Sequence record: PP813861.1
Length of the DNA: 64,000 nt
Direction: 5' to 3' (one strand)
The notes beneath the pieces were generated by a model. The model searched no databases, was not told the DNA's origin, and saw only the letters and a list, made by a program, of their open reading frames with translations. The position numbers were made by a program, and so were the translations under genes. Below are positions 2,371 to 43,760 of the stretch, piece by piece; positions within the stretch are counted from its first letter, which is position 1; each line of letters begins with the position of its first letter.

Positions 2371-2617
2371 TTTTCATTTTTTCCAATTTTTCTATTTTCA
2401 AATTAAACGGTATTGGCTCTTTATAGCCAATCCCTTATTACTAAAAGTATTAGATTCTCGAACTAAGGATAGGTTATACCCCATCTCTAATAATAAGGAA
2501 TATTATATGGGACCCCCCCAAAGGGTCCCCCCCACATAATATACTATTTATATAATTTTCTTTTTAGAAGAAAAGAGATAAATAAGAGAAATACAGTCTA
2601 TTAAAGTAATGAATTTC

Positions 2618-3439
2618 TCAAAAATTAAATAGTACACCGCCCACAAATTTCGCCGGAAGGTCCTGCCGGACAACTGTCCGGATGTGCGAGAGTAGTGGGT
2701 TTTTCAAAAATACCTGCATTGCAGTTGAATTGAGTGGTTGATTGTAACGTACGATCTTAATGGTAAATAGAACTTCCTCAACATCTGGATGGCATCCTTC
2801 AAAACTAAAATATACTTCAGTCCGATCAATAAACTGATACATTTCTACAGCTGGTTCAGCTGGATCTTTAAAGGCCAACTTATTAGCGAAATAATCAGTA
2901 TAGGCTAGAATTAATTCTTTTACATTATTTGCATTCTTCTTATCAACAAGGAATTCAAACTCTTCAAGGTTATCTGTTTTGAAAATACCTTGATAGGATG
3001 ACGACTTGATTAGTTTATCACTGATATCATCAACATGAACACCTGGCATAAATTCAATGACTGGTAGAATAAGCTTGTTACCTCCTACGCCATCAGCTAT
3101 ATGAATGCCAACCACATTACCATCACTAATGTATTCGTCATTACCGCAAATAACGGCACCAGCCGCTAGATATAAATTATCAACATATTTCAGATTATCG
3201 GCAATAATGCGAGATAGTACATATTCTCGCACCATGGCATCATCTGGACTTGACTGCGGTTTAAAAGTATAGTGGGTGTTATGACTACTCATGGTCGCAC
3301 ATGTAACAAAAACTGAAATATCTACTGGATTAAATACCCAATGAACGGAGATATCCTCTAATTTATGTGGATGATGTAAACCATCTAGCTTAGATAGGGC
3401 TTGGAGTTGTTCTTCCCAGGTGATGTTAAATTGAGTCAT
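2618..3439 (-). CDS. dip: Dip, degradosome-interacting protein (RNase E inhibitor; phiKZ gp37)
   Basis: Recognised sequence MTQFNITWEEQLQALSKLDGLHHPHKL...GGVLFNF; start moved to MTQFN (273 aa) after AGG RBS. Confidence 0.92.
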   Translation of the reverse strand: MTQFNITWEEQLQALSKLDGLHHPHKLEDISVHWVFNPVDISVFVTCATMSSHNTHYTFKPQSSPDDAMVREYVLSRIIADNLKYVDNLYLAAGAVICGNDEYISDGNVVGIHIADGVGGNKLILPVIEFMPGVHVDDISDKLIKSSSYQGIFKTDNLEEFEFLVDKKNANNVKELILAYTDYFANKLAFKDPAEPAVEMYQFIDRTEVYFSFEGCHPDVEEVLFTIKIVRYNQPLNSTAMQVFLKNPLLSHIRTVVRQDLPAKFVGGVLFNF

Positions 3440-3475
3440 TTTTTCTAACCTCTTCATTTATTAAAAATAATACAC

Positions 3476-36532: not shown

Positions 36533-37696
36533 ATGTCTACTAAATCACAACTACCAAAGAAAATCTTCAATGCGGCTAAGAGTGATTATCATCTACCAGA
36601 AATTATTCTTGGAGATGACCCAGGTCTACTAGATTCAATCCACACTCATTATCCTAAAATGTGGGACCTATATAAGCGTCTAAAAATGCTTGATTGGGAT
36701 GAGTTAGAATTTGACTTTTCTACTTGTCTAGTAGAATTTGAAACATGTGATAAATCAACTTATGACATGATGATTAAGACACTGGCGTGGCAATGGGAAG
36801 CTGACTCTGTAGCCAGTCGTTCCATTGTTAATATTCTATCACCTGTCATGACTGATTCACGAGTATGGGCAGGATATGTACGTATTAATGATAATGAAGA
36901 CGTACATGCTTTAACTTATTCTGAAATTGTACGTAATAGCTTTAAAGATCCTAAAGTTATTCTAGATGAAATTCTTAGGGTAGAAGAAGCACAAGAACGG
37001 ATGGTTGCAGTAGCCCGCACTATGGGTGAAGCACATGACGCAGTTCACGCGTATGCTCTTAATCAGGTACCCAATGATCAAGAACTTTACAATAAGGTAT
37101 TCATGTTCTTCATCGCTCTATATTTCCTTGAGCGTATTCAGTTCATGGCATCCTTTGCTGTGACTTTCGCTATTGGTCGCACCGGTGCATTCCAGCAAAT
37201 TGCAGCTGCTGTTAAGAAGATTGCCCAAGACGAATTCGAAATCCATGCGCAATATGGCCAAGAAGTTATTCGTGCACTACTAGCAACTGAACGTGGTAAA
37301 CTCGCTTATAGTCAATGTAAAGATAAAATCATTGAACTACTATGGGAAATTGTAAAGACTGAAGTCACCTGGGTTAATTATCTATTCTCTGAAGGTCGTG
37401 AACTAACTGGCGTTAATGCGACTAAACTTATTAACTGGGTACTTTTCAATGCTAATGCCGCAGCAACATTCCTAAGTGTTGAAAATGATATTGTAGAACA
37501 GTATCAAGTAGAGTTTAAAGAATCGGCTGGATTTGATTTTGTTTGGCCAGAGAAGAACCCACTTCTTTATATGGAAGACTACCTAGATATTTCATCAACC
37601 CAAGCATCTCCTCAAGAAGAAGAGAAACCTGATTACATGGTTAACGTTGTGAATGATGTTGGCGAAGAAGAAGAATTCGAAGTGGATTTCATGTGA
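36533..37696 (+). CDS. nrdB: Class Ia ribonucleotide reductase beta subunit
   Basis: WEADS, NEDVHALTYS (radical Tyr), LERIQFMASF, QDEFEIH diiron ligands. Confidence 0.96.
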   Translation: MSTKSQLPKKIFNAAKSDYHLPEIILGDDPGLLDSIHTHYPKMWDLYKRLKMLDWDELEFDFSTCLVEFETCDKSTYDMMIKTLAWQWEADSVASRSIVNILSPVMTDSRVWAGYVRINDNEDVHALTYSEIVRNSFKDPKVILDEILRVEEAQERMVAVARTMGEAHDAVHAYALNQVPNDQELYNKVFMFFIALYFLERIQFMASFAVTFAIGRTGAFQQIAAAVKKIAQDEFEIHAQYGQEVIRALLATERGKLAYSQCKDKIIELLWEIVKTEVTWVNYLFSEGRELTGVNATKLINWVLFNANAAATFLSVENDIVEQYQVEFKESAGFDFVWPEKNPLLYMEDYLDISSTQASPQEEEKPDYMVNVVNDVGEEEEFEVDFM

Positions 37697-38109
37697 TGAA
37701 TAAATTAATTCTTGTACTATCCTTAGTACTCGCATCTATGATTCTTGAAGCCAGTGAAATTAAAACAACCACTAATGGGATTATTAAACAAGTCGATTGC
37801 CAACTTGTAGCTAAAGATAATAGTATCGCTGGTGCAACTATTGGAGGTACCGTAGGAGCTGCTGCCGGTGCTGCGGTAGGTAAAGCACTTCTTGGTAAAT
37901 CGGGTAGTTGGATTGGAGGTCTGATTGGTGGGGCAGCTGGCGGTGCTATCGGTAATAACATGGCTGCAACAGAAACTTACCAATGTAAGATGATCATTGA
38001 AGATCATGGTAAACTGTACATGAATCAAATCGTCACAAATAAGAAGTTAGAACCAGACATGTCTGTAACTATTGTAGAAATGTCTGATGGTACCTACGAA
38101 ATAATGTAG
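37693..38109 (+). CDS. Secreted/membrane glycine-zipper protein (SlyB/Pcp-like)
   Basis: N-terminal signal peptide plus GATIGGTVGAAAGAAVG...IGGLIGGAAGGAIG zipper. Confidence 0.8.
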   Translation: MMNKLILVLSLVLASMILEASEIKTTTNGIIKQVDCQLVAKDNSIAGATIGGTVGAAAGAAVGKALLGKSGSWIGGLIGGAAGGAIGNNMAATETYQCKMIIEDHGKLYMNQIVTNKKLEPDMSVTIVEMSDGTYEIM

Positions 38110-38194: not shown

Positions 38195-40087
38195 ATGAAT
38201 AAAATGCTAAACTTCCTAAACCGCACGCTATATAGCGGTACTGAAAAAGTATCTTCAAAAGCTACGCCGAGTCTAGAACACTTTAAAACAAATGTTGAGC
38301 AAGTCGATAAAAAGATTCTACAACCCTTTAGTACTAAATTTAAAATCATTCTAAAAGAATGTTACAGTAATGAAGAGTGGGTTGAAGAACAGTCATTTAT
38401 TGAAGAACCTATTGATCTTGGTTCAGCTGCACGCGGTCTTACCGAGCGCGGTATTATGCGTGGTGATTGGGGACGCTTAGCGCATTCCACTATTAAAGAA
38501 GCAGAAGGTATGATGCGTACTTATAGTGGTCGTCTAAATGAAGATATGGAGGCATCTGAAATTAATGAAGTAATTCAAGATATGCCTTATAACTTCACAG
38601 CTGGTTCAGCTAATACCAGTCGTTTAGAAGAAGATGATTCTATTTTTGTTGAGGCTGATACAACTGTAGTTGAACCTCTATCTAAGCAGACTCTGCCAAA
38701 AGTAGCAGAGCTTACTAATCAATTAGTGGAAGTCTATAATCGAATTACCGAAGAATTTACAGAAACTGGTATTGCTAAAGTTGAACAAGTTGAGCAACCA
38801 GCAGTACTTGTAGCACTTGGTGAGATCATTAGTAGTTTTAATAAACTAATTGATTTATCGTGCGGTGCTCTACCAGTGGAAGAAACTGTTATTGTAGAAG
38901 AAGATCCGTTACCTGCTATTGTTACTGGTCCAACTACTGAACCCATTGATGGTGAAATCCCACCGGTTGATGCTATCAATAATACCGCATTAGAAGAGTT
39001 TATTGAAGAAGTACTAAGTACTAATCCAGAATTTATTAAATACCAAAGTATGGGTGATAGTAATATTGATTCATATCTAACTGGGGATGACTGGATTATA
39101 CTAAAATTTAAAGATGGCTCTTATTATTTATACAATGCCCAAAGTGCTGGTGAAACGAATATAGAAATCATGAAAGATATGGCCGAAACTGGTAGTGGTC
39201 TTAATGGTTTTATAAATCGCGTTGTCCAGGGTGGCTATGTAGAGAAGACCATCGTTAATGAAATCGATAATAATCCCGGCTTTATGTATGTCTCAAATGA
39301 AGGTCTTATCGACACCATTAAGAGTATCTTCAACTCTGGCCCTGAGATCAATCTCGATAAAAAGAAGAAAGCTATTGCTACGCTGAAAAGTACCTATGGT
39401 GACGCCAAATGGGTGGCAGAAGCAAAGCTTAAAACCGGCGAAGTAAAAGTATCGAGTTACGAGACGTTCGCGTCCAATGATCCTAAGGCCGCAAAAGCCA
39501 ATATCACTAATGCTGTAGCTAAAGCTGATCGTCACAACCAGAAAGTTCTAGATGAGAACAGTAAGATGCTAGCTCCCGTGGTTAATCTGTTCAAAGGGAA
39601 TGATTGGCAAGACCCTAAGAAAGTCGCTACTCTTTTGGCCGAATGGAAACCTGATGTAAAGACAAACTTCCAAGAACCCAAATGGCCCGATAATGCTGGT
39701 ACTAAGATTAAGTTACTTGATGCTACCGGTATTGTGGAAGCAGCTAACGTTATCATTGATGTTCTGTCTAACAACACTAAGACTATTGCGGACGCTTGGT
39801 TAGCCCAGTATCCTGACCTATCTGTCAATGGAGATATCTACAAACATAAGCTATCCACTATTAAAGATAAAGACGCTCTTGAGGACGTATATCTGCTGGC
39901 TAAACGGGCCGATAATATCATTCTTAACATTCATGCAGCGTACGACGATGCTAAGGTCGAATCTACCTATCGAGTATTTGCTATCGATATGTTGAAACTA
40001 ATGCAAGCGTCTATCAGTAGCTTCCCAAGTGGTTCATCCGTAGAGAACACTAATGAACGCAATACGCTCATTGGTATTGAAGAATAA
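38195..40087 (+). CDS. Head (internal/ejection) protein, gp303-like, with prohead-protease site and KTSC-like domain
   Basis: 630 aa; VSNE|GLID matches phiKZ S/A/G-X-E cleavage motif; synteny after nrdB and gp304. Confidence 0.7.
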   Translation: MNKMLNFLNRTLYSGTEKVSSKATPSLEHFKTNVEQVDKKILQPFSTKFKIILKECYSNEEWVEEQSFIEEPIDLGSAARGLTERGIMRGDWGRLAHSTIKEAEGMMRTYSGRLNEDMEASEINEVIQDMPYNFTAGSANTSRLEEDDSIFVEADTTVVEPLSKQTLPKVAELTNQLVEVYNRITEEFTETGIAKVEQVEQPAVLVALGEIISSFNKLIDLSCGALPVEETVIVEEDPLPAIVTGPTTEPIDGEIPPVDAINNTALEEFIEEVLSTNPEFIKYQSMGDSNIDSYLTGDDWIILKFKDGSYYLYNAQSAGETNIEIMKDMAETGSGLNGFINRVVQGGYVEKTIVNEIDNNPGFMYVSNEGLIDTIKSIFNSGPEINLDKKKKAIATLKSTYGDAKWVAEAKLKTGEVKVSSYETFASNDPKAAKANITNAVAKADRHNQKVLDENSKMLAPVVNLFKGNDWQDPKKVATLLAEWKPDVKTNFQEPKWPDNAGTKIKLLDATGIVEAANVIIDVLSNNTKTIADAWLAQYPDLSVNGDIYKHKLSTIKDKDALEDVYLLAKRADNIILNIHAAYDDAKVESTYRVFAIDMLKLMQASISSFPSGSSVENTNERNTLIGIEE

Positions 40088-40107
40088 CTTACTGAGTATG
40101 TAATGAT

Positions 40108-40258
40108 ATGTAGAAATGATCCCTCCCCCTCGTTTCTACATTAGTCATAATAAATCGGAGCCAGTCCCCCTTCCAACTGGCTCCCAGAGAGTAAAACTCT
40201 TTGCTGGGCATTAATGACGATATATCGCCTCCCTTCGGGGAGGCTTTATATTTTTTTT
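40108..40258 (+). ncRNA. Candidate structured sRNA with two C-rich loops
   Basis: TATGTAGAA motif, three hairpins, UUCG terminator, no ORF. Confidence 0.55.
40227..40244 (+). terminator. Intrinsic terminator
   Basis: GCCTCCC-TTCG-GGGAGGC then TTTATATTTTTTTT. Confidence 0.85.
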
Positions 40259-40312
40259 GTTTTTTACTAGTGTACCTTAAAATATGTATAAATAAAATAG
40301 AGTAATTATAAC

Positions 40313-40765
40313 ATGATCAAAAATGAACTTTTACCAGGGCTAATCTATGCCCAAAAAGAATTTGATAAAATTGCAGCTAATGTAAAAGACTATGATAAGT
40401 ATAAAAGACGCGAAGCTGGTAGGGCAAGTGCCGTTTTAAGAAGTCTAGTGAGCAATATTGTAAATCAGAATAAACCATCCTCACTTGAACATGAAGGCAA
40501 AGTTAGTACTACTAATACTAATGAATATTTAGAAGAAGTTAATAATTACTTCTTTAACATTAATAATATTAAATTAATTTCTCCTAAACTCATAAAAGAG
40601 AAATTAACAATTGATCTAATGAATATTTATGTTAAATGGAATATGATTGGAGTGGCTGGCCGAAATGATGTTCCAATTATTGAACACAGAATTAATGATT
40701 GGTGCGAAGTGACCGATGTCTACATTAATGGTAATAAGATAACTTCTTTACAATGGCCACGTTGA
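40313..40765 (+). CDS. Hypothetical protein (gp302 position)
   Basis: 150-aa ORF. Confidence 0.75.
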   Translation: MIKNELLPGLIYAQKEFDKIAANVKDYDKYKRREAGRASAVLRSLVSNIVNQNKPSSLEHEGKVSTTNTNEYLEEVNNYFFNINNIKLISPKLIKEKLTIDLMNIYVKWNMIGVAGRNDVPIIEHRINDWCEVTDVYINGNKITSLQWPR

Positions 40766-40823: not shown

Positions 40824-40908
40824 GCCCGAATGGTGAAATTGGTAAACACAGAAGACTTAAAATCTTCCGGCTACGGTCTTGTCGGTTCGAATCCGACTTC
40901 GGGCACCA
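40824..40908 (+). tRNA. tRNA-Leu(UAA)
   Basis: GCCCGAA/TTCGGGC acceptor, GAAGA-CT-TAA-AA-TCTTC, long variable arm, TTCGAA T-loop, encoded CCA. Confidence 0.95.
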
Positions 40909-40917
40909 ATTTAAATA

Positions 40918-40993
40918 CGGAGTGTAGCGCAGTTGGTAGCGCGCCTGCTTTGGGAGCAGGATGTCGGGAGTTCGAGTCTCCCCACTCCGACCA
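40918..40993 (+). tRNA. tRNA-Pro(UGG)
   Basis: CGGAGTG/CACTCCG acceptor, anticodon TGG at 40951-40953, CCA. Confidence 0.95.
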
Positions 40994-41014
40994 TTTTAAT
41001 AATAGGTAAATAGG

Positions 41015-41308
41015 ATGGATAATAAATGGATATCATGGGAACATCAAATTATAGGAACAGATCTTTACGCTATTCTTAGTGACCCTGAATTAACTAATAT
41101 TCAATTAGCTCAAGGCTTACACTATCTAACAGAAGCAAAGTCTTCTGTATTACATGTTTGTAATAACCATATTACATTCACTGTAACCTATCCACATGGC
41201 ACATTTAGAACCAATGTAATTAGAGAGTGCCCTGCTAGTGATACAAATACATTCAAATGGTCAGGTGTATTAGTCCGTCAAAAAGATGGAACATTCTTAC
41301 CAGAATAA
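41015..41308 (+). CDS. Small hypothetical protein between tRNAs
   Basis: 97-aa ORF. Confidence 0.7.
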   Translation: MDNKWISWEHQIIGTDLYAILSDPELTNIQLAQGLHYLTEAKSSVLHVCNNHITFTVTYPHGTFRTNVIRECPASDTNTFKWSGVLVRQKDGTFLPE

Positions 41309-41315
41309 ATAAAAA

Positions 41316-41392
41316 GGGCCTATAGCTCAGTTGGTTAGAGCAGGCGACTCATAATCGCTTGGTCGCAGGTTCAAGTCCTGCTGGGCCCACCA
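41316..41392 (+). tRNA. tRNA with CAU anticodon, most likely tRNA-Ile2 (lysidine, reads AUA) rather than Met
   Basis: Anticodon arm GGCGACTCATAATCGC as in bacterial ileX; C4:G69 and C5:G68 TilS determinants; no initiator features; CCA. Confidence 0.85.
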
Positions 41393-43615: not shown

Positions 43616-43649
43616 ACTAAAGATAAAAATACTAGTGCGATGATATTAT

Positions 43650-43760
43650 GTAGGATTACTGTATCTAGATAATCCTAAAGCTATCCACTAAATACACTCG
43701 GTGGTAGATTTAATTATAGAGTGTGTCTGAGTGCCAGGGGTTTGCCACCCCTGGCTATAT
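43650..43760 (+). ncRNA. Candidate small RNA: 5' hairpin + H-type pseudoknot + terminator
   Basis: TATGTAGGA motif; stems 43651-58/43670-77, 43681-89/43700-07, 43693-99/43719-25; terminator 43733-55. Confidence 0.5.

Follow-up and report, generated by a model that had tools for sequence, protein, structure and literature searches.

In a 64,000-nucleotide (nt) stretch of sequence record PP813861.1 (hereafter the window), derived from a phiKZ-like jumbo phage, we analyzed a predicted 141-nt small RNA (sRNA) that lies in the spacer between a gp303-like virion structural gene and a PHIKZ302-like open reading frame (ORF), all on the plus strand. We regard it as almost certain that this RNA is real, structured, and conserved. 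Judged from its sequence and position, it is the SL2/KTN4-type orthologue of a 141-nt small RNA of phiKZ, and it represents a family that is present in Phikzvirus, Pawinskivirus, and Miltoncavirus (phage PhiPA3). The transcript itself is already published; the three-genus range of the family, its fold, and an invariant apical loop are new.

Transcript, promoter, and terminator

At the orthologous locus of phiKZ, ONT-cappable-seq detected an abundant 141-nt primary transcript upstream of PHIKZ302, ended by terminator T131 (Putzeys 2024, PMC10914365). A northern blot confirmed the abundance and length of this RNA, longer read-through forms were seen, and the authors proposed a regulatory role via conditional termination, with no mechanism given (PMC10914365). 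The paper, in which the RNA is the noncoding RNA (ncRNA) candidate TU237, does not describe a structure or a seed for it, any conservation outside the genus, or how it would act. Earlier phiKZ RNA papers name other ncRNA candidates, not this one, and no paper in the literature that we searched assigns the RNA a structure, a family, or a function. Window positions 40096–40330 align at 91% to phiKZ (NC_004629, 273934–274163, minus strand), where the counterpart locus lies between the PHIKZ303 and PHIKZ302 homologues on the strand of the tRNA cluster. The two phages agree in locus, flanking genes, length from the TATG (+1) to the terminator, and fold. They differ in one base pair of the 5'-terminal hairpin P1 (A-U in phiKZ, G-C in the window, a compensatory change), in one C-to-U change in loop 1, in one junction base, and in the C-terminus of the upstream gene, which is unrelated before position 40096. 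The transcript was measured in phiKZ only; its length of 141 nt in the window is a prediction from the sequence.

We place the probable start of the window RNA at G40110 because the phiKZ non-virion RNA polymerase (nvRNAP) initiates at the G of TATG (PMC4666361) and because the resulting length matches that of the phiKZ transcript: G40110 and the last base of the terminator hairpin, 40244, delimit 135 nt, to which a further 6 nt are added to reach exactly 141. The word TATGTAGA is kept in all 10 distinct sequence variants that we recovered from the three genera, and the nvRNAP of the phage most likely starts the RNA at the G of this conserved TATG. A second TATG, at 40097–40100, is missing from phiKZ itself. 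About 20 nt upstream of the TATG, an AAcTTAC word (40086–40092) resembles the phiKZ middle-promoter motif, AAanTTACc near –24 (PMC4666361), a resemblance that would make it a candidate middle-promoter element. The terminator fits the motif of the phiKZ terminator family (PMC10914365) and is leaky; queries that included it matched 9–11 places per phiKZ-like genome.

The RNA is a genuine independent small RNA and not merely the 3' tail of the gp303-like mRNA, because its phiKZ orthologue has a mapped start site, an abundant 141-nt species on northern blots, and read-through forms. The initial annotation of this stretch, which had proposed an sRNA here and named a 3'-tail-only scenario as the finding that would overturn it, was correct on this point, and that scenario fails. 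An independent promoter and an intrinsic terminator are both present, and the RNA is noncoding. Its only ORF (32 codons from ATG 40116) has lost its start in phiKZ and is shifted in frame in Pawinskivirus; we therefore rejected the coding reading as not conserved. A 40-aa ORF on the minus strand (40089–40211) was likewise rejected, its start lying in a junction segment that is absent from the other genera. Small coding sequences are annotated inside the linker of the RNA and through its terminator in HHBS36_1 (L003, 1624–1716) and HPP-Temi (L034, 510–617); these lack a ribosome-binding site as well as conservation in PhiPA3 and are probably annotation artefacts. The RNA itself is unannotated in every genome record inspected.

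Two other identities were tried and rejected. An RsmZ-like RNA with GGA loops on the minus strand is contradicted by the T-run of the GC-rich terminator, which is on the plus side only, and by the published reads, which lie on the gene strand; within the RNA, consensus scans of the minus strand gave one weak sigma-70-type promoter-like match (9/12), and what resembled a terminator there was simply the P3 hairpin. As for a tRNA or tRNA-like element, ARAGORN and the Rfam tRNA model found only the five annotated downstream tRNAs.

Fold and conservation in three phage genera

A 175-nt stretch of the locus folds with a minimum free energy (MFE) of –60 kcal/mol, compared with –35.5 ± 3.9 kcal/mol for 200 dinucleotide shuffles (z = –6.2), and none of the 200 shuffles was as stable. 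The folding expected by the initial annotation was borne out, and the two stems, the loops, and the UUCG terminator that it had listed are all present in the sequence. Stem 1 (40108–19 with 40130–41; loop UCCCUCCCCC at 40120–29) has the described 12 bp, one U-G among them, in the DNA; only 10 bp lie within the RNA because its probable start is G40110. A third hairpin is present as well, but the AGAGU-AAA-ACUCU given for it was too short, its stem, P4, being really 8 bp. Missing from the described architecture was a long-range helix, P2, which encloses the P3 and P4 hairpins and thereby makes a three-way junction (Table 1). The predicted probability of being unpaired is 1.00 for loop 1 and ~1 for loop 3, and is ~1 for the loop motifs in all genera.

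Members of the family were recovered by BLAST and synteny: five distinct variants in Phikzvirus, four variants in Pawinskivirus (BRkr, HHBS36_1, PA1C, phiHQ, PS119XW, phiLBG22, and HPP-Temi), and the RNA of PhiPA3 in Miltoncavirus. The gp303-like gene lies directly 5' of the RNA in every member, and tRNA-Leu is the next RNA gene after it in all three genera. The 3' neighbor varies by genus, being PHIKZ302 in Phikzvirus and two unrelated ORFs in PhiPA3; Pawinskivirus has none, and its tRNA-Leu begins ~46 nt after the terminator of the RNA. Because the downstream cargo differs in this way, the RNA is not a leader for a single gene. A covariance model (R1) built from eight Phikzvirus and Pawinskivirus sequences, with PhiPA3 left out of the build, matched PhiPA3 at 56.6 bits (E = 7e-11); the scores of HPP-Temi and the window RNA were 84.5 and 130.8 bits, respectively. 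The same model found no second copy of the RNA in the 64-kb window and no match in the syntenic spacer of 201phi2-1 (Pseudomonas chlororaphis) or Phabio (P. fluorescens). When IMG/VR, JGI metagenomes, and GTDB genomes were scanned with patterns, the only matches were PA7 and PhiPA3 or chance hairpins fitting just the P3 positions of the model.

When each of the 10 variants was folded separately, the same four helices were predicted: P1, P2 closing P3 and P4, then a linker and the terminator. In a MAFFT alignment of eight sequences, 98.1% of cells were in standard pairs, compared with 38–49% when the partners were slid by 1–3 columns, and four pairs showed a double-sided change. RNAalifold recovered P1, P3, P4, and the terminator from ten full-length sequences, with five double-change pairs. 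An alignment of the ten sequences fitted to the model (A4), which favors structure by construction, gave eight double-change pairs, a number equalled by 2 of 500 shuffles, and a covariation score of 0.318 against 0.183 in shuffles. In this alignment, five of the ten P1 pairs change on both sides (97.9% of cells paired). In P3, every cell is paired and two pairs are double-change, including the loop-closing pair, which is U-A, C-G, or U-G; P4 has one double-change pair, seen in 5 sequences, with 92.5% of cells paired. P2 was misaligned by MAFFT and was read by hand: its core runs from GUCAU/AUGAC through AUCAC/GUGAU and ACCAC/GUGGU to ACCGC/GCGGU, compensatory at three of five positions, and an equivalent closing helix of other sequence is found in Pawinskivirus (9–10 bp) and in PhiPA3. 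With ten distinct sequences in three clades, these counts are to be read as supportive rather than as a formal test of significance. On this comparison of sequences, the covariation supports the 5' hairpin, the three-way junction, and the terminator, and the predicted fold is maintained through compensatory changes across the three genera.

The most conserved unpaired segment of the RNA is loop 3, with 8 of 10 columns invariant among the 10 variants. The corresponding figures are 13/18 for the P3 stem, 9/16 for the P4 stem, 8/20 for the P1 stem, 2/11 for loop 1, and 1/17 and 2/15 for the junction strands. The 8-nt core of loop 3, CCCUUCCA, is invariant in 10 of 10 variants from the three genera while the closing pair switches. 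Loop 1 changes by lineage, from UCCCUCCCCC in the window to UCCUUCCCCC in phiKZ, UCACUCCU in Pawinskivirus, and CCUACUCCU in PhiPA3, and retains only a UCC core (CUCC, UUCC, or ACUCCU) and its pyrimidine richness. The initial annotation had made its proposal depend on loops being conserved along with the stems; loop 3 conforms to this, its invariant positions standing while the stems covary, but loop 1 does so only in its UCC core. Extra CUCCUU-type tracts occur in the largely unpaired linker of Pawinskivirus and PhiPA3, and none in Phikzvirus.

The C-runs are indeed anomalous in this DNA, as had been remarked. Loop 1 is one of only two segments with at least 8 C in 10 nt in the whole 64 kb, and two of the ten runs of at least five C fall inside the RNA; most of the remaining C-rich segments of the window form the 5' side of a terminator hairpin and pair with its G-rich arm. 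C-richness is not, however, a conserved feature: the long C-runs are confined to Phikzvirus, and the other two genera have ACUCCU and AACCCUUCCA in their place. The second segment with at least 8 C in 10 nt belongs to a hairpin with two C7 runs (GGACCCCCCC-AAA-GGGTCCCCCCC) at window 2500–2540, between two minus-strand ORFs; it is flanked by an inverted AT-rich repeat and may be the terminator of the minus-strand gene at 2618–3457.

Table 1. Positions of the RNA, its predicted structural elements, and neighboring genes in the window.
Feature	Position	Strand	Description
Promoter region	40086–40110	+	TATG at 40107–40110; G40110 is the probable +1
Small RNA, 141 nt (predicted)	40110–40250	+	Orthologue of the phiKZ TU237 ncRNA candidate upstream of PHIKZ302
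P1, 5'-terminal hairpin	40110–40139	+	10 bp, 40110–19 with 40130–39; loop 1 at 40120–29, UCCCUCCCCC
Three-way-junction domain	40144–40218	+	Closed by P2 (40144–48 with 40214–18); MFE and centroid structures agree
P3 hairpin	40157–40184	+	9 perfect bp (40157–65 with 40176–84); loop 3 at 40166–75, CCCCCUUCCA
P4 hairpin	40185–40203	+	8 bp (40185–92 with 40196–203), loop AAA
Intrinsic terminator	40227–40258	+	7-bp GC stem with UUCG loop (40227–44), then TTTAT...T-run
gp303-like virion structural gene	38195–40087	+	Left flank of the RNA, kept in all three genera
PHIKZ302-like ORF	40313–40765	+	Right neighbor, reached by read-through
tRNA-Leu, tRNA-Pro, and tRNA-Met genes	40824–41392	+	In all three genera, tRNA-Leu is the first RNA gene 3' of the sRNA

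Proposed pairing through the loops and other explanations

The account that we favor, and hold only tentatively, is that the pyrimidine words of loop 3 and loop 1 pair in trans with purine-rich sites of the Shine-Dalgarno (SD) or GGA type, a variant directed at the host RNAs RsmY and RsmZ included. The RNA would act by base pairing through two apical loops that are always unpaired in the predicted fold and that would present the pyrimidine motifs, CCCUUCCA in loop 3 and CUCC, UUCC, or ACUCCU in loop 1; in Pawinskivirus and PhiPA3, the single-stranded CUCCUU tracts of the linker would serve as additional motifs. By pairing with GGAG, GGAA, or AAGGAG, SD-type sequences, the RNA would, from mid infection onward, block ribosome access to a subset of mRNAs or cover their GGA motifs, and several motifs might act redundantly, as in sRNAs of the cuckoo/NfeR1 type.

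We favor pairing with purine-rich ribosome-binding sites (RBSs) because the loop motifs complement the SD words of the phage. Upstream of the start codons of 80 ORFs called in the window (positions –18 to –4), the enriched words were AGGAG (36-fold), AAGGA (32-fold), AGGAA (27-fold), and GAGGA (21-fold), and CUCCU, UUCC, and CUCCUU are complements of such words. A conserved and accessible seed is available in the loop 3 core, which is invariant in the 10 variants and has a predicted probability of ~1 of being unpaired. The precedent for this mechanism is NfeR1, in which three redundant anti-SD loop motifs block RBSs (PMC10746234, PMC4615179).

Several results weigh against this account. The mean duplex energies with the 80 phage initiation regions, –5.8 kcal/mol for loop 1 and –5.3 kcal/mol for loop 3, were no better than those of composition-matched shuffled loops (–6.2 and –6.0 kcal/mol); only loop 1 surpassed the intragenic controls (p = 0.001). 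Ungapped complements of loop 3 of at least 8 bp are about as many in the window as in shuffled sequence, those of loop 1 exceed shuffled sequence only through terminator arms, and many of the window complements of this length sit in the G-rich 3' arms of terminator hairpins; for a specific phage target of the loops, the 64-kb window gave no signal above controls. The C-run of loop 1 is specific to Phikzvirus and the loop is poorly conserved, while the P3 stem is conserved beyond what pairing needs and would also fit recognition by a protein. Finally, the RNA is made inside the phage nucleus, and the ribosomes are in the cytoplasm. The anti-SD likeness pointed out by the initial annotation holds insofar as the loops are unpaired and complement enriched phage SD words, but it does not extend to duplex energies. 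The selectivity for host RBSs that had been suggested is unsupported: none is predicted because the RBSs of the phage carry the same complementary words.

We compared the RNA with known sRNAs of this design. Its matches in Rfam are all sub-threshold. The best of them, and the only one to cover both loops, is the family of the cuckoo RNAs, ar14 (RF02344), which aligns loop to loop at 19.9 bits, well under its gathering threshold of 58.8; the homologues from Pawinskivirus and PhiPA3 do not match RF02344. Like the alpha-r14/cuckoo RNAs (NfeR1, CcsR), the phage RNA combines unpaired loops that carry a pyrimidine, anti-SD-like word with variable stems and conserved loops. Unlike them, it has a three-way junction and a motif-free hairpin, the cuckoo loop word CCUCCUCCC is absent from its loops (UCCCUCCCCC, CCCCCUUCCA, and AAA), and it comes from a phage of a gammaproteobacterium, whereas the cuckoo family is alphaproteobacterial. 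The RNA is an analogue of the cuckoo RNAs in design and not a member of that family. In sX13 of Xanthomonas and RepG of Helicobacter (both named in PMC4615179), as in RsaE/RoxS and RNAIII, C/U-rich apical loops pair with G-rich sequences at or near the RBS. None of these has an Rfam model that matched the RNA at E ≤ 10, and they share neither sequence nor synteny with it, so the likeness is one of principle only.

An alternative that we consider unlikely is a cis attenuator, in which the structured RNA and its terminator set the read-through into PHIKZ302 and the tRNA genes and the 141-nt species is a by-product of termination. It agrees with the two strict forms, short and read-through, and the conditional termination described by the discoverers (PMC10914365), and with the position of the RNA upstream of tRNA-Leu in three genera, separated from it by the short gap noted above in Pawinskivirus. 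Against it, the MFE and centroid structures contain no antiterminator pairing with either terminator arm, the junction strands that would form the pocket for a ligand or factor are unconserved, no Rfam riboswitch or leader family matches (among the cis-regulatory families none reaches threshold), and the invariant part of the RNA is an apical loop far from the terminator. Moreover, the TATG that directly follows the terminator in Pawinskivirus could start a tRNA transcript alone. A riboswitch or attenuator leader loses ground on three counts: the junction strands lack conservation, the predicted structures contain nothing that competes with the terminator, and the downstream cargo varies by genus.

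We likewise think it improbable, to a similar degree, that P3 with its invariant loop, and perhaps P1, is recognized by a phage or host protein, for which the RNA would be a decoy, scaffold, or sponge. Pyrimidine-preferring RNA-binding proteins include ribosomal protein S1 and Rho, which we mention as leads only. The conservation of the P3 stem and of loop 3 beyond the needs of target pairing speaks for such a role, as does the lack of a preferred RNA target in the phage window. On the other hand, the recurrence of the same CUCC/UUCC word in varied contexts, namely two loops and single-stranded linkers, fits redundant seeds better.

A broader form of pairing appears less probable still: in nucleus-forming jumbo phages of P. 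aeruginosa, an abundant RNA with two to four exposed CUCC/UUCC words would mimic the pairing face of the 16S anti-SD tail and compete broadly for RBS and GGA sites. If true, this would amount to a layer of RNA-based translational takeover or of rewiring of the Rsm network, and not to the control of a single gene.

As a special case of the pairing model, the RNA might be a sponge of the GGA-rich host RNAs RsmY and RsmZ, or of GGA sites bound by RsmA, which we consider a slim prospect on sequence grounds. GGAA and GGAG are complemented exactly by the conserved words UUCC and CUCC, respectively. Moreover, only phages of P. aeruginosa have the family, and relatives with P. chlororaphis or P. fluorescens as host lack the RNA at this locus; this restriction, however, also follows from the phylogenetic closeness of the three genera.

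Very little speaks for the remaining two alternatives. The first, also raised by the initial annotation, is pairing in cis or trans with the G-rich 3' arms of the phage's terminator family (GGGAGGG), which would tune termination or 3'-end stability. The complementarity is real: over 8 nt, loop 1 (CCCUCCCCC) can pair perfectly with arms of the GGGGAGGG type. Terminator arms account for five of the seven window sites that match loop 1 over 8 bp or more (one more is the antisense strand of the RNA itself) and for two of the eight such sites for loop 3. It is mechanistically weak, however, the arms being locked in GC hairpins of 7–9 bp whose 5' partner is made first and lies ~3–7 nt away. Nor is it conserved while the RNA is, because loop 1 is ACUCCU in Pawinskivirus and PhiPA3 and there retains only ~5 bp with their own terminator arms. 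The second, equally far-fetched, is that the RNA has no function of its own and is a stable fragment that arises simply because a promoter precedes a terminator. The region around it can be dispensed with under laboratory conditions (PMC12676376), but four helices are kept by compensatory changes in three genera and one loop is invariant while the junctions diverge and the flanking genes diverge or are replaced.

Genomic setting and significance

The window is, on nucleotide and protein identities, from an SL2/FBPa36-type phiKZ-like jumbo phage. We make this assignment because KTN4, SL2, FBPa36, and AttikonH10 are 100% identical to window 39900–40500 in a nucleotide comparison, and because the gp304-like neighbor is 99% identical to that of SL2/FBPa36 and only 56% identical to that of KTN4 and phiKZ. 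The left side of the locus is mosaic (window 37693–38109 and 38195–40095): nucleotide homology to phiKZ proper starts only at 40096, the C-terminus of gp303 having been exchanged right up to the promoter of the RNA. On the right, no Pfam family matches the PHIKZ302 homologue. According to a transposon-mutagenesis preprint, phiKZ with an insertion in orf302 does not plaque on strain Env201, and an anti-defence role is suggested there (PMC12676376); the insertion could also be polar on the downstream tRNA genes.

The tRNA genes 3' of the RNA follow in the order Leu, Pro, Met, Asp, and Asn. A weak Rfam match to YrlA (Y RNA-like) across tRNA-Leu and tRNA-Pro (window 40852–40970, plus strand; 22.5 bits against a threshold of 69, E = 0.17) most likely stems from the tRNA-like module of that model. 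In Pawinskivirus, the tail of the terminator is GGCTTTATG (L005, BRkr, 1686–1750; likewise in L002, L016, and L034), with a TATG directly 3' of the terminator and ~40 nt ahead of tRNA-Leu. In the phage terminator family, the TTAT(G) tail may serve as a restart signal as well. In PhiPA3 (L030, 3486–3631), a TATGTAGAGAACAG segment ~140 nt upstream of tRNA-Leu is complementary to CUGUUCUCUAU, which abuts the tRNA. This complementarity suggests a structured leader with pairing ends, which may correspond to the 201phi2-1 sRNA reported 'immediately upstream of a tRNA'.

Two other phage RNAs invite comparison. Species 1 and 2 of phage T4 are stable small RNAs of unknown function that are encoded in a tRNA gene cluster and processed from a tRNA precursor. 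The 141-nt RNA is likewise phage-encoded next to tRNA genes, and differs in having its own start site and terminator. A second ncRNA has been published for phiKZ, in the PHIKZ298/297 spacer (Gerovac 2021, PMC8545117; Putzeys 2024, PMC10914365). It is present in the window at 43646–43760 (plus strand) and, like the 141-nt RNA, begins at a ...ATTATGTAG / GATATTATGTAG motif, the TATGTAG start context being common to both; it forms a hairpin from +1 (GUAGGAUUA...UAAUCCUA) and ends in an intrinsic terminator (GCCAGGGG...CCCCUGGC). It differs in having no pyrimidine- or C-rich loops and no sequence similarity to the 141-nt RNA, and model R1 does not match it.

Among nucleus-forming jumbo phages, phiKZ serves as the model, and it is a candidate for therapy; none of its ~17 reported ncRNA candidates has a known function. 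One of them now has a defined start and end, a fold backed by covariation, a family in three genera, an 8-nt loop word that never varies among the variants, and a UCC-type motif that recurs. Our analysis also provides a testable seed hypothesis and a covariance model with which the RNA can be annotated. If the pairing account is true, it would raise the question of how an RNA from the phage nucleus reaches its partners, and, within the literature that we searched, no base-pairing riboregulator would have been described earlier from a virulent jumbo phage.

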